From the NCBI GenBank assembly GCA_964035545.1, contig OZ037773.1, positions 1,951,751-2,015,750 on the forward strand: a DNA stretch of 64,000 nucleotides, written 5' to 3'. Every line of letters starts with the position of its first letter. Position 1 is the first letter of the stretch. This DNA is from Bugula neritina (taxonomy: Eukaryota > Animalia > Bryozoa). The translations under genes were made by a program, and so were the position numbers. This document shows, piece by piece, positions 606-58,900 of the stretch. Below the pieces are notes generated by a model, which did no database searches, had not been told where the DNA came from, and saw nothing but the letters and a program-made list of their open reading frames with translations.

Positions 606-2799
606 TTCCCCTCACAGGTTTTCTGCGGGATATACTGGTCAACCAGGAACTGTATAACGTAACGGAGCAAGTATGCATTGAGTGTGTAAACAATTTGAAG
701 CTCATTAGATCTTAGCGAACTTTGTAATAATTATCTAACTAGTTGCCGATACTCCCTGCATATGCATTTACTATACATTTATATATCAATGCCAGGTGCA
801 TGGTAAAATAAACTTATAATCACGGTATGTAATATAGTTTCTAAATGACGTCCTATATTATTTTCAACCATGCATGTCATATAACTTATAAGTCTACCTA
901 TATACTATTTACTTCATGTCATATGCTAGCTACCCATTATTATATATTATTGTTTGATTTATGTTCTACAATTTCACGTTTATGTGTCTTATATATGTAA
1001 TTCTAGCTATAATAAATAATTTTTCACATATTACATATTATCTACTTAATGCTTATTGTATTGTCTCTTTAGTCTTATATATTGTATGTCAAATCCCATA
1101 TAATATTATTTCTTTAGTTTTATATATTACCTAATGCACTGTCATATAATATTATTGTATTAGTTTTATATATCATTATTGACCTAATGCTATATACTGT
1201 GTAATTATTTCACTCACCATTATATCTCAAAATTTTACTAGAACTAAATTAAAATGATGCAATAATCTTCATTTAAAATGCTAAGATTGAGTACAATGTG
1301 TGATGTACTGTGATACTATACTATAATTGTTTTAAACTTGTCAAACATTTTATTATGATTTTATTAATTGCAACAAAGTTAAAATAATAGAAAGTACTGA
1401 AACAGCATAAAATTACTTGCTAATCAGTATGTGAGTATGTGAACATGAATATGAAACATAATTGAACCTAGATATTGCTTTTACATATCATTATTATAGT
1501 TTATATTACAATGTATTGTATAATATTGCATAAAATATAACAGTATTGTATTATAATAATATATACCATGAAAGATACTACTCTTATTTAGCAGTGATAT
1601 AATTAAGCAATATGAAATGCATCGATAATATAAAGTAACTATAACTATATAATTATCATTGATACACTTTATATTGCCAAATTATATTATTGCTAAACAG
1701 GAGTAGCATCTTTTATATCAAAATATATTATTAAAATGTGAAATCAAAATATTTCATATAGCGACATTATACTTCTATAGAATATTTATATATTATATAT
1801 AATATATTACATATAACACTGCAATATATCACTATAGTATAAATTTCATATAACAAATGCTGCCCACAATGCGATACCAATATGATTAATATTATAATAC
1901 ATTATTATCATATTATTATACTACTACTACATATTGAAAATACAAAAAAATTATTTTATGATATTACTATGTTATAATATAATTATAAAACCTTGTTATT
2001 TAATATTAATATATAGTACTACTTTAAATTGATAATTATTTAATATTATTTGACACTATTATGTACTGTAATTGTATAATTTTATAAGATGTAACTATAT
2101 AATAATAATTATGTAATAGTATTACCATAAAATGCTACTATATAATATAACATTATAATATTAATATATATAACTCTACTACTTATTTATTATATATTAT
2201 AATTATTTATAATACTATGATATGCTATGTTTATATATTAATATTATATTACACTACTATACATTATATACTTATATACTAGTATTAATATTATATTATA
2301 CTACTATATATACTATACTTCTATACTGGTATTAATATTATAAGATACTATATAATATATTCTAGTAATACCTGATACAATTGAATCTAACTGATTAAGC
2401 AGCTCCTACAAGATGCCAGAGTTCCAGTCTTATGAGCTGCTGCTTCACACCCCACCTTATATACATGCTATCTTTCTTCTCTCAACACAATGGCAGCTCT
2501 CCAACACAATGGCAGCTCTCCAAATATTGGCAGCTCTCTTGCGCACTGGCAGCATTCTACAGATCATTTTATTCCTATAAACAAGTCATGTGATCTCCAT
2601 GAAAAATCATGTGATTGCTAGCTCCTGGTTATGCTGCTGTCACCACCTGGTGCTGTCAGTTACTTTGGTTAGCTTAGAGTTTATTTATAATATCTTCCTT
2701 CCTTCAACAGGTGTCGATTGTGTTGAGATTTAAGGATACAATATAAATATATATATATATTAGAAGAAATAAAATGAGATTTGATTAATATAATGGCGC

Positions 2800-2852
2800 A
2801 TTTATTACTAGTAGTTTCGTACACAAGAACGATGTGCACTCGTCAGATAAAT
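2800..2852 (-). ncRNA. Type I hammerhead ribozyme (reverse-strand twin)
   Basis: Reverse complement of 2877-2929. Confidence 0.85.
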
Positions 2853-2876
2853 TAGCCACTATCTGACGAGTGGCTA

Positions 2877-2929
2877 ATTTATCTGACGAGTGCACATCGT
2901 TCTTGTGTACGAAACTACTAGTAATAAAT
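2877..2929 (+). ncRNA. Type I hammerhead ribozyme
   Basis: ATTTAT-CTGACGA-GTGCACA(tcgttct)TGTGTAC-GAAA-CTACTAG-TA-ATAAAT: stems I and II pair fully, stem III is short, the CUGANGA and GAAA core is intact, and the GUA triplet predicts cleavage after 2923. Confidence 0.85.
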
Positions 2930-3028
2930 GCCATTTTATTAATCAAATCTCATTTTATTTCTTCTAATGTTTACGCTCTAGATTTATTTCTATAGAGCAC
3001 TCTAGTAACGTTTTATAAACACTCATTT

Positions 3029-3081
<53 letters not shown>

Positions 3082-3205
3082 CATATATAAATATATATAT
3101 ATATATATATTTATACATATATAAATATATATATATATATATTTATATATTATATTTATAGTATATTACATATAATTCAATATATGTAATGTGGTATATA
3201 ATATA

Positions 3206-4852: not shown

Positions 4853-7800
4853 ATGTCGGATGACTTTCCGTTCAAGGCTGAGTATGCTAAGAGTGGCCGA
4901 GCTTCATGCAAAAGTTGCACAAATTCTATAGCAAAAGACGCATTACGTTTAGCTATTATGGTTCAGGTATGTAATTTAAATTAAATTTAATTCTAGTGTT
5001 TTACTAAGATAACTGACAGTAGCTACTAGTACTGGAGTTGATGACTATCTAAATTTCTATAAATCTAAGTGTAACCTAAACTTAAAGTTACTGTATCAAT
5101 TAGCCTATAGATAGTTATCAGCTATGGACTTATGGAGGTCTCTGAATTGTTGCCTTGATTGGTCACAATCAACTTGATTGTTACCAATCAAGGCAATAAT
5201 TCAGAGACCTCCATAAGATAGGATTAAGTTTTTGTTCAGTCAATACAGCACAATCAGTACTAACTGTATGGCTATTGACTAATGACTGTTAACATATTAC
5301 CCATATGAGGCACACTCTTTCCTCCCTCTAGGGCGGTCTAGCGTGATGTTCGCTTTGAGTAAGTTCGTGTAATACTGATACTGATGGTGATAGTATTAGT
5401 CACATACAAATTACAATGTAATTTAAGTTAGGCTACTTAGCCTTATACTTATAGTCTGAGTTATACTTCATACAGTTATATACTTTTAGTTACTTTAAGT
5501 TAGTTATAATGTACTTATAGTTATAGTGTATCTCTATAAGTTAATCTAAGTTGACTTTGAGCTGTAGTGATCACATTTACTGTAACATGATCACTAGCAC
5601 TAGTGTGAGTACTCAGCTGTGTATCAAATTCAATATAAGTATTAATATGACTATGAATAATCACTATGATTATAATTATTACTTGGTAACCTTTTATCGC
5701 CATGACATGATTGGGTGGCGAGATTATCATTATGATCATCAATCAATAAAGTTAAATGAATAAGTATAATCACCATAGACGCATGTGATAAAACTAAGTT
5801 AGCAATATACAGTGACTAGGTTTACGGCTATCTTGTAAGATTGAGTATAACAATTAGTTTATCTGATATAAAATACTATTGTTATAAATTCAATTATACA
5901 TAGACTAAGTGAGTAGTGATAGTCATAGACATAGTGATAGTGCAAGTGATAATGATTCTCATACTCATGGTTCAAATAGGCATTTGGTGCCTCGTATTTT
6001 TATAACTAAATGTAAAATTTATTATTGCATTTGTTATTATATAGGTAATTATTATTTTGTTCATGCCATATAGTCTTAGATAAGATACAGTAAAAATATT
6101 AAATTTTATGCTTAGTTTTAATTTGACTTTTAACTTGGGTATTTTGATATCTTCTTTATTTGTTCATGTTAGGGAGCAGCCGTGGTCTAGGGGTTAGAGC
6201 GTTTGCCTAGTAAACATGAGGTCATGGGTTCGAGCCCAGAAAAAGGCCATTGGTGATGTTAGGAAGAGCATCCAGTCATAATTGCTTCTGTGCCTCATTT
6301 GAACAAGTCCTTAGTCAGTTCTAACAAAAACCCTTCCATCAGGGGTTTCCCACAGGGATAGCTACTATAAACTTGCGTGAAGTTTTTCTTTATTTGTTCA
6401 TGTTGACCCAATTTAGTAACAGCTTGGTGTAGATGTGAATGAGTGAATGCCACAAAAAGTTATAGGCCTACTATACTTTTAGAGTTATTCATATTGAGCT
6501 TTTTTTTTATTTTTTTAGAAGCAATCATCAATATGAGTCTTGAGCTAACTTTAGGACGTATTCCTGAATAATCAAATAAGTTGCATGTTGCAGTCTCCAC
6601 ACTTTGATGGCAAACAACCCAACTGGTTCCATTTTCAATGCTTCTGGAAGCGAGGACGACCCACGTCGTCTACTGAAATCGCCGGGTTTGATGGTCTTCG
6701 TTGGGAGGATCAGGAAAAAATAAATGGGAAGCTTTCAGGTTCGTATTAGTTATTTAAGGGTGAACTGTGCTAACAATTCTTATGCGATAATAAACTATGA
6801 AGGGTAAATGAAGTAAAGTATGGTTTGAATACTTTATGAAGGGTAGAGTGGAGTGTGGGAATGATTTACTATTTTCTTAGAAAGTTTCAGCTGATGATTA
6901 TATGCTCTGTAACATTAGTCATGGTCATGGACTTGCTATTTTAGAACTGGCCACACTATCATAACTCTTCTTTCCAAATAGTCACAGCTACAAGAATTAA
7001 AGCCTACATTGTTGTAAAAATTGTAAAATATGTAAAATAGCATTCGGTAATTGCTAGAAAATACTCATGTGTCTCTGTAACAGCAGATGTAATACCACCA
7101 GTGTGTCTTTGTAGCAGTAGATGTAACAATGTTGAATCAGGTAATTGATGGAAGATTTCACTCTTTTTCACAGGAGGAAGTAAAGGTAGTAGCTCAACAG
7201 CTGGTGTGGCAGAAAGTGGAAACTTCTCTGCGGAATATGCCAAGTCTGGGAAGAGCAAGTGTCGGGGTTGTGAAGACTTCATAGCTAAGGTGTCTATCCT
7301 AATGCTTGTGCATATATACAATGTGCTATACACACACACATATATAATATATATATATATATTACTACACACTGTGTTATACGTATATGCACTGTTTTGT
7401 ACATATATACACTGTGCTGTACATATACAACACTATCTTGTATTATCCCCTGCACCGTGTTATACCTATATAGTACTATACACTGTGTCATACATATGTA
7501 CTACTATACACTGTATTATACGTATGTACTACTATACACTGTATTGTACGTATGTACTACTATACACTGTATTGTACGTATGTACTACTATACACTGTAT
7601 TATACGTATGTACTACTATAAACTGTATTGTACGTATGTACTACTATACACTGTATTATACGTATGTACTACTACACACTGTATTATACGTATGTACTAC
7701 TATACACTGTATTGTACGTATGTACTACTATACACTTTGTTATACGTATATATTACTATACACTGTGTTATACATATGTACTACTATACACTGTATTATA

Positions 7801-10800
7801 CGTATGTACTACTATAAACTGTATTGTACGTATGTACTACTATACACTGTATTATACGTATGTACTACTATACACTGTGTTATACGTATGTACTACTATA
7901 CACTGTATTATACGTATGTACTACTATACACTGTGTTATACGTATGTACTACTATACACTGTATTGTACGTATGTACTACTATACACTGTATTATACGTA
8001 TGTACTACTATACACTGTATTGTACGTATGTACTACTATACACTGTATTGTACGTATGTACTACTATACACTGTATTATACGTATGTACTACTATAAACT
8101 GTATTGTACGTATGTACTACTATACACTGTATTATACGTATGTACTACTACACACTGTATTATACGTATGTACTACTATACACTGTATTGTACGTATGTA
8201 CTACTATACACTTTGTTATACGTATATATTACTATACACTGTGTTATACGTATGTACTACTATACACTGTATTATACGTATGTACTACTATAAACTGTAT
8301 TGTACGTATGTACTACTATACACTGTATTATACGTATGTACTACTATACACTGTGTTATACGTATGTACTACTATACACTGTATTATACGTATGTACTAC
8401 TATACACTGTGTTATACGTATGTACTACTATACACTGTATTATACGTATGTACTACTATAAACTGTATTGTACGTATGTACTACTATACACTGTATTGTA
8501 CGTATGTACTACTATACACTGTGTTATACGTATGTACTACTATACACTGTATTATACGTATGTACCACTATACACTGTATTATACGTATGTAGTACTATA
8601 CACTTTGTCCCGGTAGGGGGAAGCTAGACTTGCTGTCAAAGACTTCACCAGCCAAAGAGCCATAATGTATGGTGCCCAGAACCTCTGGTACCATGTTGAC
8701 TGTTTCGTGTCCAAAAGAGAAGATGTTGGCTTCACTGCGGATATGAACCCAGACAAGTATGATCTCTGTCTATAAATGTATTTGCATATTTATACTCCTG
8801 TATATTGTATGATGCTTACATTATATTATACCTACCTGTAAGTATAAACTACTATATACCTGTATATTATATTATACCTACGTGTAAGTATAAACTACTA
8901 TATACATGTATATTATACTATATCTACGTGTAAGTATAAACTACTATATACATGTATATTATACTATACCTACGTGTAAGTATAAACTACTATATACCTG
9001 TATATTATATTATACCTACGTGTAAGTATAAACTACTATATACCTGTATATTATACTATACCTACCTGTATATTCAGAATGCAAGGGTTTGGCTCACTCT
9101 CTAAAGATGATAAAGATGAAATTCTTAACAAACTGGGAAAAGGAGACAAAAGGTGTGTTTAGATACTTATATGTGTATGAATGCCTGTACGTCTTTGCAA
9201 GTATATGTCTGTGTGTCTACACATTTACGGTTCTGTCTGCCTGTATGTCTACACATTTATGTCTGTAAGTCTGTCTGTGTGTCTACACAGTTTTATTTTG
9301 TCTGTAAGTCTGTCTGTGTGTCTAGTAAAAAGAGAAAAGCAGACACTTCTAAAGATGTTGTTGATTCAAAAAAATCGAAGAAAGATTCAGGAGAGGCAAA
9401 GCAGCTTAAGGTAACTTTTATTTAGCCTTAGAAACTTAGCATTGTAGTTGGGGTGTATGACGCAGTGCTGCTCTTTCTATGTATTGAGGAGATTGTACTC
9501 TGGTTACAGGACCAAAGCACTCTCATATGGAAGTACAGAGATGGCCTCCAGAAGGAGGTGTCCACCCAGGCTATGAGAGGGCTGTTGGAGTACAACAACC
9601 AGAATGTGGTGAATGGAGAGAGTGATCTCTTGAATAGGGTGTCAGACTGTATGGCATTTGGCGCTCTGAGCAGGTGCCCCGAGTGTAAGGATGGTCAGTT
9701 GGTATTCAGGTATGTTCATGTCAACTGTTACTCCGAACAGGTGCCCTGAGTGTAACAATGGTCAGTTGGTATGTTCGTGTCGACTGCCATTTGGAGCAGG
9801 TGCCCCGAGTATCAGGTCATGTTGCAGAACGGATGCCTATCATTGTACGGGAAACTTGTCAGAGTGGACCAGGTGCTCCTATTCTACTAACACCCCTAAG
9901 AGAGTTGCATTCAAGGTGCCAGCTGAATACCACGATGTTGCATTCTTAAAGACCTACAAGTATGTTAAAAGAGACCGTATCATTCCTAAAGCTACCCTAC
10001 AGGCCAGTAAAGTAAATCATCAGGCGTTAGCTGGCACTTCCTTTTTCGCCTACGGTTCGTATCTTATCTCCTCTTTGATTAGTTGTAGATTCTATATTTG
10101 ATTGGCTACTGTTGCACTCTGTATTGTTATGTAACCTGTTAACATTTGCTCATCTGTGATTGGTCAGCATTGACTGTGTATTTCACAGGAAGTACCAGTA
10201 AAGATAAAACGGCTCTGAAAACTTTGATATCTAGTCTCGGTGGGAAACTTGTCTCTAAACTCGATGGCTCTGTAACCGCTGTTATAAGTAGCAAGGCAGA
10301 CGTTGAGAAGATGAACAAGAAGATGGCGGAAGTAAAAGCACTGGACATTCCTGTCCTTGCAGAGGGTACGACCTCTAACACATAGCACTAGTCATATATT
10401 ACTCTATTACTAGTCATATTACTCTATTACTAGTTATATTACTCTATTACTAGTTATATTACTCTACAACTAGTTATATTACTCTATTACTGGTCATATT
10501 ACTCTACTGCTAGTCATATTACTCTATCTGTCTTGATAAATGTGTTTCTCTAGGTTTCCTGGAGGCATGTAAAGATGGTAAACCAATAGAATTGGCTAAA
10601 ACTTACAAGTTGTCAGACTGGGGAAAGCCTTTTGAGAAATGCTTCACTGATGTTGTTGACAGCAAAAGATCAACAAAAAGTGCTGCCGTGCGCGCTGCTG
10701 AGGCTAGAGCAGGTTCGTTTATACTGTATGATACTATACTGTATTATGTTATACTGTATGATACTATACTGTATTATACTATACTGTATGATACTATAAT

Positions 10801-28600: not shown

Positions 28601-28824
28601 GTTTCTATTTCTATTTTTATTATTGCTGTTGGATTTAGGTGTCGGGTTATATTTTAATTTATAGTCATATCCACTGTTTGATAGTGCTTCTTGGTATGGT
28701 TGTATGGTGGTGAAAAAATCTTCCTCATTGGAGGATATATATATATATATATATATATATACTAAAGAGAGCACATGAAACTAGTAGTAATAAAGTGTTT
28801 TAAATCAAATTTTATCGTTCATTA

Positions 28825-28859
<35 letters not shown>

Positions 28860-31800
28860 ATATATGTGTATATAAAAGTAATGAACGATAAAATTTGCTT
28901 TAAAACACTTTATTACTACTAGTTTCATGTGCTCTCTTTAGTGGTAAACTATACACCATTTTATATATATATATATATATATACACTGTATATATATATA
29001 CAGTGTATATATATATACACTGTATATATATATATACAGTGTATATATATATATATACTGTATATATATATACAGTATATATATACAGTATATAATATAA
29101 CAGTACATATGATACATATTGAAATTATCAAGTTTAAATTATCACTGTTTTCCTGTTATGAAAATAAAACAAATACTATAATACTTGTTCAACAAATAGA
29201 TGTATGATTAGATAAAGATTGTAGTAATGTTACAGTTTGCACCTTCACTTGTACATGTTATAAGTAAGTTAATATTTACTTTTCTACTCTATTTTTAAGA
29301 TTCTTATCAATTGTTTCTCTTTAGCAATCTCAGCTCACTTCACCAGACTGTGGAGAAGTTTGACAAGCAGTGTGAGGAGGCAGAGCTGAGTCTAGCAGAT
29401 GCGGAGGTGTTACTCAGCAAAGCCATACCTACGGCTAATGAAGAACCTATTGTAATGCAAAGCGTTGAAGTTGTGAAGACGCAGTGTAAGACACGACTAC
29501 ACGAGTGTGTAACGCGCCTCGAGCAAGCTGAGATAGCTGTCACTGAATTACAACAGAAAAATAGTGGACTCAGTGAAGTGGAAACGCAAAAAGACATTGT
29601 TAAAGGTGCAGTAGATCTATAGTAATATAATATGGTATGTTGTATATACAACTTGATAATATTATAATATAACAGTATGTAGTATACAAAACTTTATAGT
29701 ATTTTAATGATAGTATATACAACCCTTTAGTATTACATGTATATAATAGTATCATGCACAATTCTATAGTATGATATTATAGTATATGGTCTATGCAACT
29801 TAATAATGACATAATATGACAGTGTGCAGTATTTGAAATATTTTAGTATTATATGACAGTATATACAACTATACCATAATATTATAATGGTATACATGCA
29901 CAATTTTATAGTATGATCTTATAGCCTATAGTATATGTAACTTTATGTTATTATATGATAGTATATAGTATATACTGCTCTAAAGTATTATATGATAGTA
30001 TATAGTATATAAAACTCTAAAGTATTATATGATAGTATATAGTATATACAACTCTAAAGTATTATATGATAGTATATAATATAGATAACTCTATAGTATC
30101 AGGGGAGATAATTGTGTGGTCTCATTATTTAGTCATCCAAGCTAAACACAAAACGCTGTCGGAGAAGTTACAGGAAGTAGAACATAAAATGACAGCAGCT
30201 GCAGACACCCAACGAGCTCTAGAGTGTCTTATACAGAAGTTTGACAACTGGATGGAGAGATCAAGGAGTACTGTGGGAGAAGAAATTAGTCTGACGAGTG
30301 GACTGAATGATATGCGAGATCATATTATAAGACTTCATGTGAGCTGTTTACATTAGACAGTGCATTGTGGGTATAGCAGATGGTTACATTGTCGAATGCA
30401 TTCTTGAAATAGTATATTACATATTGTCAAATGCATTATGGGTACATCAGATGTTCACATTAGCCAATGCATTGTGGGTATAGTTGTTCATGTTGTCAAA
30501 TGCATGGTGTGGGCATAGTTTTTTACATTGGCAATTGCAATGTGAGTATAGTTGTGGGTATAGCAGATGGTTACATTGGTAAACGCATTGGTGGTGTAGT
30601 TGTGCATGTTGTCAAATGCATTGTAGTTATGATTGTGTACAAACGTTAGAGGTGATTGTAGGAACTAGAGAAGTCTGAGGAGACGACGGTAGGTTGGGTT
30701 ACCGAGATGAAGAAAATGGTGCGGTCTCTCGCTCCATTCTCCAGCAAACAAGAGCAGACGTCTTTGTCAAATCGCATAGCTGCTAAAGAGAAAGGATTTG
30801 ATGAGCTGAGACGTGAGTTCTTCTAAAGATCATTGAAATATTATCAAATATGACGTAACATCTTTCCGCTTACTCTATCTGTTAAATACCTGCTACTTGT
30901 AGACACTGACTAGTAGTATAGAGATGTGTAGACTAACTCTCATCTATTTATTATATATTCTGGCTAATAGAATAGAATAACTGTCATGTAATTATTATAT
31001 ATTCTGGCTAATAGAATAGAATGTGTAGACTGACTGTCATCTATTTATTATATGCTCTGACTAATAGAATAGAATGTGTAGACTGACTGTCGTCTATTTG
31101 TAGACACTTTAGCTGACAAAATAGCAGGCCTTTCTAAAGAAATGGATGTGGTGATAACATGGATACAGAAATCAGCCTCTCTTTCAGAACGGCGCAATAA
31201 GTTGAAACACCAGCTGTCTGATCTTTCTAATATAGAAACTACTGAAGAATCTGTTTCTTCTAAACTCAACACATTGCAGGTAAATATATACTCTAAACTC
31301 AACACACTGCAGGTAAATATAATATACTCTAAGCTTATTTAAGTGTCATAAATATTTAGTATATACATGGAATAACCTCATATATACATAATATATATGT
31401 ACATGTAAAATGTTGTCTGTTACAGTCACATGTTTCATCAGTTGAAGAGCTTCAGCGGGAGCTTCATGAGCTAACGTCTGCAATACCAGCAGCTGTCACC
31501 GAAAAGCAGCGCAAATCTTCCCAGAATGCAGGGGTCAGTTTTGCCGTCGGCTCAGTAATACTTTTTGTTCGTTTCTATTGGTTGATTGAGCAGAGTGGTA
31601 TATTTCTCTATTGGTTGTATTAAACAGACACACATGATATATGCCTTTATTGGTTGAGTCAAATAGATGTATTCGCTACACGTTTCAGAGGTCATGTGAC
31701 TCTCTCTACTCAGAAGTTGTTTCTATGCATAAGACACTGGAGCAGACAGACAGAGTTTGGGCACAGTTCAAACATCTATCTGGTCAAGTTAAAGATCATC

Positions 31801-49964: not shown

Positions 49965-52900
49965 TTACTACTACTACTACTACTAATACTACCAGTACTA
50001 CTAATACTACCAGTACTACTGCTACTACCAGTACTACTGCTACTACCAGTACTACTGCTACTAGTTTATAGCTTTAATTATTATCTTGTATTTTGACAGA
50101 AGAAAATGGAGAGAAACAGGAAGACACAGGGGCTGCTGTCAGCTCTGCTTACAGAGAAAGTACAAGTCGACAGCCTCAGGTTACAGACTTCACCCTTGTC
50201 TAGACCAGTCTCTGCAGACACCAGTATGTTACACTTTACTGACTAGTACCTAGTAGTTAGACACTTAGCTGATACCATGAAACACCTGAATGACACTTTT
50301 TTGTTGCTTTAGTTAATGGCATTGCAAGATTAGAGGCGCGGGTGAGTCACCTCTCCACACGAACAAGCAGTAAGTTAAGAAGTTTGTGTGAAAGAATGGA
50401 GACAGACGAAGAGCTCAATGAACTGCACAACCTCTACTCTGACTGGAGGAACAGAGTGACACACTTTGCTGCTCAGCCAATCACAGGTTGCGTAAATTTA
50501 GCAACTCCTTACTAGGTCATGTTAGTCAGACTAGTGAGTTACTGGCAGTTAGTGAGAGTTACTGGCTGTTAGTAAGTTACTGGCAGGTATAATCACTTAC
50601 TTTTGTTTTTCTGCAGGTGACGTGGCAGAGTTGCAGGCAGAGAAAGCCAGCTGTCTCTTCTACATAACTATGGCTGAAGTATACAAACTCTCTCTCACTT
50701 CTCACCCCTCTTTCCTTGCTGACAACCACCAGGAACTAGTAGGACTAATCCAACTGAGGGAACACAGTCTGAGCTCTTTGATACAGAAACACAGTTTGTT
50801 TGAGAGGCTGAAAGAGAAAGTGACTGACTCGCTGTTGCAGCTTGAATCTCAACTACTCTTGCCGGACGGCAGTTACGGCAGCCATGTTGGACTCAACAGC
50901 CGAGTCCCAAAACTCAAGGCAGCGTTTGAGCAGCACCAGCGGACATGTCTTGTCATGAGACAGATCTGCCAAGAGTTGCTGCCGCACTGTAATGGTGGAG
51001 CCAAGACTAGGCTAATAGCAGCAGTAGAGAGGTCAAGCAGTCGGTGGCAAGGAATTCTGTCTAAACTGATGTCACTTAGTGAAGAGTCAGCGGCTATTGT
51101 CACCAATTTTAGAAACTTGACGCATAGCCTAGTGTCTTTTGCTAAGGAGGTAGGTAGTGTGAGGCGGGGTACGGGCGGCCCCATACCTGAACATCAAGAT
51201 GACCTGCTGGAAAGACAGTCACAGGCTGATGTGTTTGACTGGAAGTTGGAGAAACTCAACACCAAGTACTCCGTTATAAAATTTGAGTTTACAACTCTGT
51301 GCTCTCAGGTGGAGCAACCCGCAGACATGGAGCTATGCTTTAGTTTGGGTAGACATCTGATGGAAGGCGCAGAGTTTATGGTAGCCGGTGTGAAACACGA
51401 GCTGAACGATAGCTTGTCTGTCTGGAACTATTTCATATCTGATGTCAACTCAACTCTCTTAGAAATGCACAAACTTGAGAAGCTGTATCTGAATGAGCGA
51501 CAATTAACGATTGAGGAGCTCTTGGAAGAGATGAAGACACAATATTCTGCTGACTCGCGTAGAGTCATACAGAAGGTGCATACTGGGGCATATGCTATAT
51601 TTACTTGCACTTTAGAATACAATTTAGTAATATACACTGTATATACTTACACTGCGGTAGTATGCACTGTAGTGGTAGACACTGTGGTAGTCTACACTGT
51701 AGTAGTACATACTGTATATACTCACACTATTTATATTGTAGTACACACTGTAGTAGTACACATTGTAGTGGTACACACTGTAATAGTATACAATGTAGTG
51801 GTATGCACTGTAGTAGTACACACTGTAGTAGTACACACTGTAGTAGTAGACACTATAGTGGTACACACTGTAGTAGTACACACTGTAGTAGTAGACACTA
51901 TAGTGGTACACACTGTAGTGGTACACACTGTAGTAGTACACACTGTAGTAGTACACACTGTAGTAGTAGACACTGTAGTGGTACACACTGTAGTAGTACA
52001 CACTGTAGTAGTAGACACTGTAGTGGTATACACTGTACTAGTACACACTATTATCATATCATCTGCAGGCGGAGCAGCTGGTCTCCAAGGGCACTCGTCT
52101 TCTCACTCTCACTAGTGACGTGTTTGGTTCTGCGATTCAGCACGGAGTTGTCTCTCTCCAGAGTGCTATCACACATCTCACTAGACTGTCTGCTGCTAGG
52201 GCTAGTAAACTCAAAGATACAATGTCAGCCATCTTAGAGTTTGAGTCTGGGATGAAATCCTTGAACCAGTGGCTCAAGGCCACTGAAGGGTCACTCAACT
52301 TCACTCCGGCAGACTGGCAGGAAGGCACAGTGCTAGCCAAGTACTTTGTTTCACTGTATAACATATATGATGTGTGAATATTCACTATGTACTAGCATTG
52401 GGATGTCTTTGTAAACTGTACATAAGCATCTTATTCTGTAGCCACCAGTACCTGAAACAACTGGAGAAAGAGATCTCTCACCACTCTAGAACTGTAACTG
52501 CTGTGATTAATCTCTGCAGTCTTCTGCAGTACGACAAAGATGCAGGATATGACATCACCGTCAAACAGGAGTTGTCTGCCGTCAAAGATAGGCTCAAGAG
52601 TCGCTGGAAAAAGCTGTGCGAAAAGGTAGATGAGAATCTGGTGGTTTGTCTTTGTTCTTCTGTAATTAATTGTTGAATACTTCAGTAAATTACAGTTCAA
52701 TTAATTATATCTGTAGATTGCATTCTAACTAAAAAAATTTCTGGATTACATTCTTATTAATTTTCTGTAGATTACATTTTGGTTATTATTTTCTGCAGAT
52801 AATCACTAAGAAAGAACAACTGTATGATCTTGATCAAGTCTGGTCACAGATGAGATCTCAAACAAGCTCATTGATCTCTAAGCTGCTAGAATACAAAGAG

Positions 52901-55900
52901 AAGTGTGATGACCAAGAGAGGTCTATGTCTATAAGGTCAAGGACTCATCAGTTTGAACAGTTCAGCCAAATGCTTAAAGATTGTGAAGCTAAGCATGAAG
53001 ATATGAGGCTACTAAACAATCGACTGAGGTAGGAGCTTTTCAACAACATTTTTGCTGCTTTAGTTTGATTTTACTGATTAAATAATCCAGTGTCTGCTAC
53101 AACCATGTTTCAGTCAACTATGCCCACATGTTTATCAATTTCTCATTGCAAAGATATCTTACACGGAATAACATGATCGACAAGTCTGAATGCGTGAAGA
53201 AAGCAGTAGCTCGGTGCACGGAGTTGTGGGACACCGTCTACCAGTCTCTCTCTCAACTTGTAAAACAGATGAGGAAATCTCATGAGGCGTGGACAGACTT
53301 TGTTAAGGAACGTGATGTCTTACTTATCAAAGTTAGCAATCTCAGTCTAACTTTGAAAACAGACTCTTCCACTCGAGAGAATGTTGAGGAAAAGCTGAAA
53401 AAATATCAACTTCAGGTAAACCCAGATATTTTAAGTCATTTTCTATTATCTGGCAATAATTTTTAGTTGTTTGCCATCTGACATTATTTTCTAATTGTGT
53501 TGAGTCAGGAACTTCCCCTTATTTCTGCTTGTGTATTATGATCATCTTTGTCTTTATGCTGAGTCTCTGCTGGTGTTTCTGCAGATCAATTCTCTCCTTG
53601 ACCTTCCGGTAACCAACCTGCGGGCAGTGTGCACTACAGAGGAACATTGTAAACTTGATAAGCTGATACAAGAGCTCAATGTCAGCGTCAATACGTTGCG
53701 TTGTGAGCTGCGACCTCAGGATGACTTCCACTCTGTAGAGAAGGAGCTGGAGCTGGCCCTCCATCAGACAGAAGACTTGGAGCATGGTCAGATAGTGTAT
53801 TATGATTATTCTCACATTTTTCTTTACTATCACACAACATAACGTCATATCTAAAGGCAGATTTAAAGTAGTGTGGTTGTACTGGTTTTATTTTTTAGAT
53901 TTAGAGTCGTTCAACTCTGACCTCAGGTCATCCTCTTCCGTCCCGACCTCTGACCTTTTACCAGATGAGAGCACACTAGAAACTGACAGTAAAGTGAAGG
54001 AAATTGAGAGGAGAGTTGACCAAATAGCACAGCGAGCAGCCATACGTCGTCAGCTCAGACCTCCCATATCGCGACTAGAAAGGGCACAGAGCCAGTCGTC
54101 TGCTGTGTCTGTCAGTTCAGAAAGGGCTACAGCTGACACAATTAGATCACGTAGAAACACACAGACAGCTCATCCCCACATCACACATTTCTCAACTACT
54201 TCTCGGAATTTTTCACGGCGTTTACGAACTCGTTCCGCTGATAATCCTTCAAGCCGACCCTCAAGTCATGATGGTGAGAAGGACATGAGCCTAAGGCTGA
54301 GAGAAATTGCTCTGTCATCACCGCTACCTCTCACAATAAAGAACTTGCAAGCCTTTAACCAGAGTGTTCTTCCGTCTACATTCAAATTTGATTGGTTGGC
54401 TAATCAAGGAGCACGCTCTGTAACCAGCACAGCTCTAACCTCTGCTACTAACTTAGCTACTAGTAAGAGTTGTTAGTTGACTAACAAATAGCATTAGATA
54501 TACTAGTGTACTAATGTACAAGTGCGTAATATACTCAATATACTCTCTACTCTGTACTGTATAGTGACTATTCAATATACTCTCTACTCTATAGTGACTA
54601 CTACTCAATATACTCTCTACTCTATACTGTATAGTGACTACTACTCAATACACTCTCTACTCTATACTGTATAGTGACTACTACTCAATACACTCTCTAC
54701 TCTATACTGTATAGTGACTACTCAATATACTCACTACTCTATACTGTGTAGTGACTGCTCTATATACTCACTACTTTAAGCTCTATACTGTATAGTGACT
54801 ATTAAATATACTCACTACTCTATACTGTATAGTGACTACTACTCAACATACTCTCTACTCTATACTGTATAGTGACTATTCAATATACTCTCTACTCTAT
54901 ACTGTATAGTGACTACTCAACATACTCACTACTCTATACTCTACACTGTATAGTGACTATGCTATACGGTAAAGACTTTCAACGTGTTATTTGTTTTTCA
55001 GCAGCTGAGGCCATGCCTCCTTTTCAAAAATATCTTAATGCTAGACGTAGGAGTTTCTCACAAGAAAGACAGGGTAGTGTGAAGGGTGCAGCTAAGTTCC
55101 CTCCCAACAGGTTTGTTATATGATACTACAGATACTCAGTTTATGATTGCAGAAATCTATTCTTCTCTAGCCAGTTCTCTGTGTACGCTGTGCATCATTC
55201 TATCACTTCTCTCTCCATGTAGAACTAGGAGCTTGTCTTTAGAGCGGAATCTGACTGGAGAAGCATTGCTTCAAAGGTCAAGATCAACCACACCTACAAG
55301 GCAAGGATTGCATAACACTTTGTCTCCTTTACCTGCACTATCGGTAAACTCGCAGTCTACAGGATTTCTTCTCTCAGCTGCACCCGTCCTGTCCAGTCCA
55401 TCTACTAGGAGGTCTCTTTGTAAGTCAGCATGCCTTGTTCTCTTTTGTATGTTCCTTTTATTCAGTATATGCTTTTTAATTTCTGTATCCATCTATAGCT
55501 TTTTTCTATATTTCTTCTATACTATCTCTATATTCATCACCTTCTATACTATCTCTATATTCATCACCTTCTATACTATCTCTATATCCATCACCTTCTA
55601 TACTATCTCTATATTTATCACCTTCTATATTATCTCTATATCCATCACTTTCTATATTATCTCTATATCCATCACCTTCTATACTATCTCTATATTCATC
55701 ACCTTCCATACTATCTCTATATTTATCACCTTCTATATTATCTCTATATCCATCACCTTCTATACTATCTCTATATTCATCACCTTCCATACTATCTCTA
55801 TATTTATCACCTTCTATATTATCTCTATATCCATCACCTTCTATACTATCTCTATATTCATCACGTTCTATACTATCTCTATATTCATCACGTTCTATAC

Positions 55901-58900
55901 TATCTCTATATTCATCACCTTCTATATTATCTCTATATCCATCACCTTCTATACTATCTCTATATTCATCACCTTCCATACTATCTCTATATTTATCACC
56001 TTCTATATTATCTCTATATCCATCACCTTCTATACTATCTCTATATTCATCACCTTCCATACTATCTCTATATTTATCACCTTCTATATTATCTCTATAT
56101 CCATCACCTTCTATACTATCTCTATATTCATCACGTTCTATACTATCTCTATATTCATCACGTTCTATACTATCTCTATATTCATCACCTTCTATACTAT
56201 CTCTATATCCATCACCTTCTATACTATCTCTATATTCATCACCTTCTATACTATCTCTATATTCATCACCTTCTATACTATCTCTATATTTATCACCTTC
56301 TATATTATCTCTATATCCATCACCTTCTATACTATCTCTATATTCATCACCTTCCATACTATCTCTATATTTATCACGTTCTATACTATCTCTATATTCA
56401 TCACGTTCTATACTATCTCTATATTCATCACGTTCTATACTATCTCTATATCCATCACCTTCTGTACAATCTCTATATCCATCACCTTCTATACTATCTC
56501 TATATTTATCACCTTCTATACTATCTCTATTATATTCATCACCTTCTATACTATCTCTATATTCATCACCTTCTATACTATCTCTATTATATTCATCACC
56601 TTCTATACTATCTCTATATTCATCACCTTCTATACTATCTCTATATTCATCACCTTCTATACTATCTCTATATTCATCACCTTCTATACTATCTCTATAT
56701 TCATCACCTTCTATACTATCTCTATATTCATCACCTTCTATACTATCTCTATATTCATCACCTTCTATACTATCTCTATATTTATCACCTTCTATATTAT
56801 CTCTATATCCATCACCTTCTATACTATCTCTATATTCATCACCTTCTATATTATCTCTATATTCATCACCTTCTATACTATCTCTATATTTATCACGTTC
56901 TATACTATCTCTATATTCATCACCTTCCATACTATCTCTATATTTATCACGTTCTATACTATCTCTATATTCATCACCTTCTATACTATCTCTATATTCA
57001 TCACCTTCTATACTATCTCTATATTTATCACCTTCTATATTATCTCTATATTTATCACCTTCTATACTATCTCTATATCCATCACCTTCTGTACAATCTC
57101 TATATCCATCACCTTCTATACTATCACTATATCCATCACCTTCTATACTATCTCTATATTCATCACCTTCTATACTATCTCTATATTTATCACCTTCTAT
57201 ATTATCTCTATATCCATCACCTTCTATACTATCTCTATATTCATCACCTTCTATACTATCTCTATATTCATCACCTTCTATACTATATCTATATCCATCA
57301 CCTTCTATACTATCTCTATATTCATCACTTTCTATACTATCTCTATATTCATCACCTTCTATACTATATCTATATCCATCACCTTCTATACTATCTCTAT
57401 ATCCATCACCTTCTATACTATCTCTATATTCATCACTTTCTATACTATCTCTATATTCATCACCTTCTATACTATCTCTATATTTATCACCTTCTATATT
57501 ATCTCTATATTCATCACCTTCTATACTATCTCTATATTCATCACCTTCTATACTATCTCTATATTCATCACCTTCTATACTATCTCTATATTCATCACCT
57601 TCTATACTATCTCTATATTCATCACCTTCTGTTTCCTGTTTCAGCTCCCCTCTCAGTCCGATTCTCACCAGCTGTTGAGAGAGAGTTGTTGTCTCCATGT
57701 GAGAGAAGTGAACCTCACTTTGACATCAAGCAGTGTCTCCAGTGGGTGGATAAGCTAGAAGTTTTACACACGAGCATATGGAGTGTGAACAGTGTGATGG
57801 GGGACAACCTGAACACGCTAGTCGCACACTGCAAACACTATAATGTAAATTCACTCACCATGTTTTGTGTTCTATATCCTACTCTATGCAAACTGCCAGT
57901 TCTAACAGGTTTACTCGGCTTCTCCATTACTGCACCTACCACCATCTAGATGCCGTAGTGGAGAAATTGAGATAGCCTAAGTTTTTAGAAAAATGTTTTA
58001 GATTTTGGTTTGGGGCACGGGTGGAAATGTTTGCGAGAACATAACTTCTTTTGCTACATTTCTAATCTAGAACACAGGCTTTTCTCAGTTTGTCCATATT
58101 TGCGCCTACCACCATTATTGCAGGAACTCTTGTCGCAGAGCCAATGTTACAAGGCGGCCATTTTTCCTACCTCCACCGTTACTCAGCGAGAGCAGTTAAA
58201 CGCTCGGTGGAAGCAAGTAGAAAGATATTTCTCATCAAGAAGGGACACTCTAGTTCGAGCTCTGGTGGCCAGTGCTGAGTTGAAGAAGTTAATAGGATGG
58301 TTTGCCGATGATGTCACCCACGCTGAACTCAAGTTACTAGGTGGAACTCAGTCTAAACAGGTGAGTCATTTCTTTTACTTCCTGTATACCATAGTGTATG
58401 TGTAATTCCTCTGTATACTGTATATGCACTGTACTTTCTGTATATACAGTAAGTACAGTGCATATACAGTAAGTACAGTACATACAGTACTTACTGTATA
58501 TACTGTATATATGCAGTGTATGCTGTATATACTGCACTTACTGTATGTGTACTTACCGTATCTAATGTATATACTGTATATGTACTTAATGTATAATGCA
58601 TATACTGTATGTGTATTTACTGTATATACTGTATATGTACTTAATGTATAATGCATATACTGTATGTGTATTTACTGTATATACTGTATATGTACTGTAT
58701 ATGTACTGTACATGTACTGTATATGTACTGCATATACTGCATATATACTGTATATACTGTATACGTACTTCTTCTATATAATGTATATGCACTGTACTTT
58801 CTGTATAATATACAGTAAGTACAGTACTTACTGTACTTACTGTATATACTGTATATGTACTTACTGTGTACTTACTGTACTTACTGTATATACTGTACAT

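Follow-up and report, generated by a model that had tools for sequence, protein, structure and literature searches.

The window, by which we mean the whole stretch of 64,000 nt of Bugula neritina DNA analyzed here, carries a palindrome of about 200 bp set in (TA)n-rich DNA. A PARP1-like gene follows on the plus strand, its ATG lying 1.9 kb downstream of the palindrome. Exon 1 of this gene occupies 4853-4966, with a GT donor at 4967. Two zf-PARP fingers were found in its first exons, and further zf-PARP exons lie at 6585-6749 (Pfam PF00645, E = 6.8e-09, below the Pfam cut-off) and from 7206 (7206-7290). The intron after 7290 contains a long minisatellite (7300-8620) that reads as open in several frames. 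The initial annotation had placed the palindrome between two divergent genes; the PARP1-like gene at 4853 (+) agrees with this on the right, but no minus-strand gene could be shown to the left. Further along the window, a 497-aa ORF (50622-52115) with no Pfam match lies in the most GC-rich part (0.44); it could be either a gene with one exon or the ORF of a transposon. At 55086-57758, an 890-aa ORF (+) overlaps a 730-aa ORF (-) in DNA of extreme GC skew (-0.73); instead of a gene, this is probably repetitive DNA of low complexity.

The core of the palindrome is a 63-nt inverted repeat (2798-2860 and 2869-2931) that is 100% complementary, with 8 nt separating its arms. In a global alignment of the arms in element orientation, the similarity reaches 2761-2862 and 2869-2967, broken only by a substitution at 2936 and a GC indel of 2 nt near 2797, which bears out the palindrome of about 200 bp initially annotated at 2760-2967. 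The RNA fold of 2755-2970 has an energy of -158.3 kcal/mol, against -37 for shuffled sequences (z = -31.6). A short filler joins the arms at the center (Table 1). Together with the AG of the right arm it spells a third CTGACGAG (2863-2870), and it creates a 13-nt direct repeat of TATCTGACGAGTG (2860-2872 and 2880-2892); as it copies this nearby TATCTGACGAGTG, the filler looks like templated junction repair. The tail that follows the right arm does not convincingly resemble either the arms or the upstream snippets of the parent element described below. While (TA)n had been noted on both flanks, it abuts only the left arm (2744-2760), and on the right the 64-nt repeated tail intervenes before (TA)n resumes at 3032. 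The whole insertion (2761-3031) measures 271 bp (102 + 6 + 99 + 64 nt) and is made of duplicated 3' parts; we rejected it on this ground as one full element unit.

Table 1. Features of the palindromic insertion and its surroundings, in window coordinates
Feature	Position	Strand	Basis and remarks
Left remnant of the (TA)n target microsatellite	2744..2760	.	Abuts the outer (3') end of the left copy; GC 0.08 over 2735-2760
Left copy, 3'-terminal 102 nt of the hammerhead retroelement, 5'-truncated at the palindrome center	2761..2862	-	Arm alignment, contig depth, loose ends
Type I hammerhead, left copy	2800..2852	-	RF00163, 28.3 bits, E = 6.8e-05; own descriptor; predicted cut 2806/2805
Junction filler CTGACG, 6 nt	2863..2868	+	Sequence
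Right copy, same 3'-terminal part of the element, 5'-truncated at the center	2869..2967	+	Arm alignment, contig depth
Type I hammerhead, right copy	2877..2929	+	RF00163, 28.3 bits, E = 6.8e-05; own descriptor; predicted cut 2923/2924, after A2923
64-nt extension (tail), right end only	2968..3031	+	Contig depth 26,000-63,000; loose ends at 3030
Right part of the (TA)n-rich target microsatellite	3032..3150	.	GC 0.02 over 3032-3160

Each arm contains a type I hammerhead motif. Our own descriptor (core, helix II of at least 3 bp, helix III hairpin and helix I of at least 4 bp) matched exactly these two sites in 64 kb, with a stem I of 6 bp, a stem II of 7 bp and a stem III of 3 bp; for a looser core pattern the chance expectation was 0.02. 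The Infernal and Rfam check proposed with the initial annotation gave a divided answer. Rfam RF00163 (Hammerhead_1) matched both motifs in a 501-nt search, to which the E-value in Table 1 refers, but at 28.3 bits they lie under the gathering score of 34, and default scans miss both: there was no RF00163 match at the gathering threshold, nor in an E-value scan of the whole 64-kb window. Matches to miRNA, rli53 and snoRNA models in the 501-nt scan were rejected as generic hairpin or TA-repeat hits, far under their gathering scores.

The catalytic core is complete, with CUGACGA, the G10.1-C11.1 pair closing helix II, GAAA, the A15.1-U16.1 pair (A2914-U2922) and a non-G residue at the cleavage position (A17 = 2923). 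In the predicted fold, helix I consists of 6 bp, a UA bulge and 6 bp, and helix III of 3 bp capped by a loop of 3 nt. The two identical type I hammerheads annotated on opposite strands, with a complete core, a 7-bp stem II and a tiny stem III, are confirmed by both RF00163 and the descriptor. The third CTGACGAG noted across the palindrome center is indeed present, but it derives from the junction filler and has neither a stem II nor a GAAA in register, and we rejected it as a third ribozyme. The two hammerheads have their 5' ends at the center, with 24 nt between the motifs. Because both, each with a complete core, face outward, both outer ends of the palindrome are 3' ends of the element.

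We investigated the wider occurrence of this sequence by aligning contigs of four public runs to positions 2560-3031 at a similarity of at least 85%, using contigs only. In the unique flank (2560-2734), run X1 gave two contigs with depths of 116.6 and 115, one identical to the window and the other with 14 differences and 4 gaps, which we read as two haplotypes. Compared with about 116 per haplotype in this flank, the summed X1 depth over 2768-3031 was 27,000-139,000, and word depth in the left copy was 27,000-58,000. The arms and the 64-nt tail belong to a family of roughly 10^2-10^3 copies, a rough figure as summed contig depth does not equal copy count. Loose contig ends show that many copies stop at 2967/2968 and others at 3030/3031, in both cases followed by (TA)n. 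Other copies are truncated at 2871, 2879 or about 8 nt upstream of the center, where they adjoin unrelated DNA or (TA)n; 2890 is a further truncation point. The family is dominated by solo copies without an inverted partner, in which the 5' end varies and the 3' end, beside (TA)n, is constant. Contigs of X13 and X16 run upstream past the center with a common sequence (…TATAGCTGTAA[A/G]CA…AT-AGTGGC…), and this shared continuation past 2862/2869 identifies the arms as 5'-truncated pieces of a longer parent.

Sequence variation within the family spares the ribozyme core: no variant reached 10% among family contigs at 2883-2890 and 2911-2915, and variable positions were 2902 (loop 2), 2905, 2931, 2936 and 2974. 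The T at 2936 in the right copy is private to the locus (A in 105,169 of 105,330 depth), and the 2-nt GC insertion of the left arm is also present in other family copies. Each arm is about 98-99% similar to the family majority and the arms differ from each other at only 2 sites, which marks the insertion as young. Family sequence also occurs in contigs of X13 and X16, two runs labeled or presumed to be RNA; these include an uncut X13 span (2906-3031), and no circular junction was seen. An exact 19-nt hammerhead word had 0 matches in viral contigs. Its sole match in JGI metagenomes, at a contig end, reads as bacterial coding DNA and was taken as chance.

Head-to-head junctions of this kind are not confined to the locus. 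A 65-nt X1 contig with a depth of 1135, equivalent to several loci, has the same center without the 6-nt CTGACG, forming a loop-less palindrome (…GCCACTA|TAGTGGC…), and carries one diagnostic substitution. Two further inverted centers were found, CCAC-TAT-GTGG in an X5 contig and GTGCAC, inside helix II, in an X1 contig, along with an asymmetric joint (2876|2916) without microhomology in an X5 contig. These junctions bear on whether the palindrome might be an assembly artefact, made by a chimeric fold-back long read or a mis-joined repeat. The exact center with its 6-nt filler was not recovered among X1 contigs, which contain variants of it only; this could speak for an artefact. However, independent short-read contigs (from X1, and from X5 with its joint and loose ends) span closely similar head-to-head centers, and the arms bear different family variants instead of being exact mirror copies, making an artefact highly improbable.

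Several loci sharing one palindrome center, and arms that amount to almost the entire element, might also be expected of a DNA transposon of the fold-back or MITE-like type that happens to have a captured hammerhead in its terminal inverted repeats. We consider this very unlikely, as the predominance of solo copies with variable 5' and constant 3' ends beside (TA)n is a signature of retrotransposition, the tail at one end breaks the symmetry, and no target-site duplication is discernible in (TA)n.

The window contains a second inverted pair within (TA)n (28736-28983). Its two copies of about 70 nt (28762-28835 on the plus strand and 28945-28872 on the minus strand) lie tail to tail around a central (TA)n, and both begin at the same point, beside (TA)n. 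Their similarity to the 3' part of the hammerhead element is about 76%, and they have a dead core (CTAAAGAG) and a collapsed helix II. This pair is older and belongs to a related family.

The 1342-nt X1 contig of the second haplotype matches the window up to 2734 and then runs on for 1139 nt as one contig, and an X5 contig behaves alike. As a single contig through a repeat of about 1000 copies is hard to obtain, this suggests an empty allele. The insertion is probably absent from the second haplotype and probably still polymorphic, judging from contigs whose similarity ends at 2734 within an aligned stretch that itself ended at 3031. As a separate observation, the two X1 haplotypes show 14 substitutions and 4 indels in 146 nt of the flank (about 88% identity), and an X5 allele is similarly divergent; this very high heterozygosity at 2560-2734 adjoins a 19-nt minisatellite (2479-2552).

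We further investigated in silico how transcripts of the locus could fold. The isolated 53-nt motif has an MFE of -8.7 kcal/mol with helix II alone, while the full three-helix fold reaches -6.0 kcal/mol, with a probability of about 0.005. The 99-nt arm by itself folds into helices I and II, and a homodimer of the motif pairs through UACUAGUA at -26.8 kcal/mol, as expected of dimer-dependent hammerheads. Each arm alone can be modeled with stems I and II of an active-looking hammerhead, and, as in other hammerheads of the PLE type, a partner copy should be needed for helix III. With only 39 nt of the opposite arm added, a transcript already forms a long hairpin at -58.9 kcal/mol, and one that crosses the center is predicted to fold as a hairpin of roughly 100 bp that buries the ribozyme. 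Read-through would yield a transcript with one motif in sense and one in antisense, which would allow neither dimerization in cis nor escape from the hairpin. The competition between hairpin and ribozyme foreseen in the initial annotation is thus supported in silico, at -158 or -59 kcal/mol versus -6 kcal/mol. Its consequence, in these models, would be a poor ribozyme and not a switch.

This bears directly on the proposal, made in the initial annotation, that the locus could act as a bidirectional cleavage or dsRNA switch. In this scenario the palindrome would act on two neighboring genes, the ribozyme of each direction being gated by the antisense arm. The position upstream of the PARP1-like ATG, the intact hammerhead cores and the predicted competition between folds are all compatible with such a role. 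However, the locus is one among very many near-identical copies, and the further course of the second haplotype's contig past 2734 suggests that the other allele has no copy. No gene was shown to the left, there is no evidence of transcription, and the monomer hammerhead fold has the very low probability given above. The switch finds no support in these results, and we rank it as the least probable of the explanations weighed here. No host function of the locus is indicated.

The same hairpin could instead make the palindrome an hpRNA locus, whose read-through duplex of about 100 bp would be diced into small RNAs that silence the hammerhead family. The hairpin is near-perfect, its arms are near-identical to a family of 10^2-10^3 copies, and a palindromic sub-family with the same center was found several times. 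Yet the unique flanks are present in no RNA run, the locus is probably polymorphic, and every inverted pair of transposable elements has such a potential, so that selection need not be invoked. An hpRNA locus is very improbable.

Altogether, the locus very probably consists of two 5'-truncated 3' parts of a high-copy, non-coding hammerhead retroelement, laid head to head with a 6-nt filler and a one-sided tail in (TA)n, in an insertion of the type made by Penelope-like elements (PLEs). Insertions of PLEs are strongly 5'-truncated and often have an inverted, likewise 5'-truncated copy directly beside them, with a tail of 30-40 bp at one end only and a preference for (TA)n (Craig et al., 2021; PMC8557442). 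The anatomy of inverted 5' duplication that the initial annotation described for PLEs is found here: 5'-truncated copies share a constant 3' end, an inverted copy of the same kind adjoins the 5' end, the target is a (TA)n microsatellite, and an extension at one end may correspond to the tail. The locus further resembles PLE insertion units in carrying the hammerhead in the repeated terminal part (Arkhipova, 2006; PMC8557442). Unlike these units, it has no RT/GIY-YIG ORF, its copies are only about 100 nt long and its tail is 64 nt instead of 30-40. This tail, which is repeated in the genome and present at the right end only, could be a longer 3' end of the element.

The hammerheads themselves point in the same direction. 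Those of PLEs have a helix II of 7-8 bp and a small palindromic helix III, and are thought to act as dimers; pairs on opposite strands, 100-700 bp apart, have been noted (Cervera and de la Pena, 2014; PMC4209133). The attribution of the motifs to the Penelope type held up in view of their long (7-bp) helix II and small quasi-palindromic helix III (UACUAGUA). Like metazoan PLE hammerheads, they are of type I and lie on opposite strands; helix III is predicted to form in trans, and the monomer folds weakly. They differ in lying only 24 nt apart, 5' end to 5' end, in a near-perfect palindrome, and in their long helix I.

Ten ORFs of the window were compared with Pfam, and none matched a PLE reverse transcriptase or GIY-YIG domain, nor did any such ORF lie beside the locus; the element is therefore a non-coding rider, and non-autonomous if PLE-derived. 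Its parent may be an animal "non-LTR retrozyme" or a rider of Penelope-like elements of the solo-pLTR type, and a retrozyme and a solo pLTR of a coding PLE fit equally. It has been proposed that animal retrozymes derive from PLEs and are non-autonomous (Li et al., 2026, preprint; 10.64898/2026.07.22.740005). The locus shares with animal non-LTR retrozymes its non-coding and AT-rich character, high copy number, type I hammerhead and likely PLE-dependent origin. However, tandem direct repeats are the defining trait of retrozymes (Cervera and de la Pena, 2020; PMC7229834); these repeats, of 150-450 bp and each with a type I hammerhead, release circular RNA, whereas the window has two hammerheads only, on opposite strands, and the locus consists of inverted fragments from which no cleaved unit could be released. 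We class the locus with inverted insertions of the PLE type, here of a hammerhead element, and not with retrozymes proper.

A different parallel is offered by the Avsunviroidae and other viroid-like RNAs, in which plus and minus hammerhead sequences, opposite each other in a rod, are likewise base-paired and hairpin and ribozyme folds are mutually exclusive. These are replicating RNAs with selected imperfect pairing, in contrast to the locus, which is an inverted duplication at the DNA level with perfect pairing and no evidence of RNA replication.

The mechanism behind tandem and inverted PLE insertion structures has been described as undefined (PMC8557442). The pair most likely arose in one PLE-type integration, perhaps as follows. 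A PLE-type GIY-YIG endonuclease and reverse transcriptase would cut the self-complementary (TA)n target, after which either strand of the target could serve as primer at the same RNA 3' end, and two cDNAs would converge. These incomplete cDNAs may then be joined midway, through end joining or, alternatively, when they snap back or anneal at short palindromic motifs, in this case CTATAG. The asymmetric joint seen in X5, which lacks microhomology, speaks against two-sided priming.

Going further, head-to-head pairs might be a systematic product of PLE-type integration at (TA)n, in which cDNAs of like polarity pair only at palindromic motifs (CTATAG, GTGCAC), with at least one palindrome later re-amplified as a unit and possibly serving as a source of hairpin RNA against its own family. 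Pairing restricted to palindromic motifs would explain the symmetric, loop-less palindromes. The suggestion of re-amplification is based on the same center and shared diagnostic substitution found at the depth of about 5-10 copies. We offer this extended scenario as a speculation and consider it rather unlikely.

Taken by itself, the locus amounts to a common transposon footprint, and annotation as a regulatory ribozyme would be unwarranted. Its value is modest: it offers a clean and young example of hammerhead-bearing PLE riders inserted as inverted pairs in (TA)n, in which both 3' ends can be seen along with truncation points, filler and tail. As the PLE insertion mechanism is described as undefined and only tandem arrangements appear in the retrozyme papers, a genome-wide census of junctions of this kind could inform this mechanism. 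If systematic head-to-head integration proved true, it would give a concrete and testable step in the unresolved transposition cycle of PLEs.
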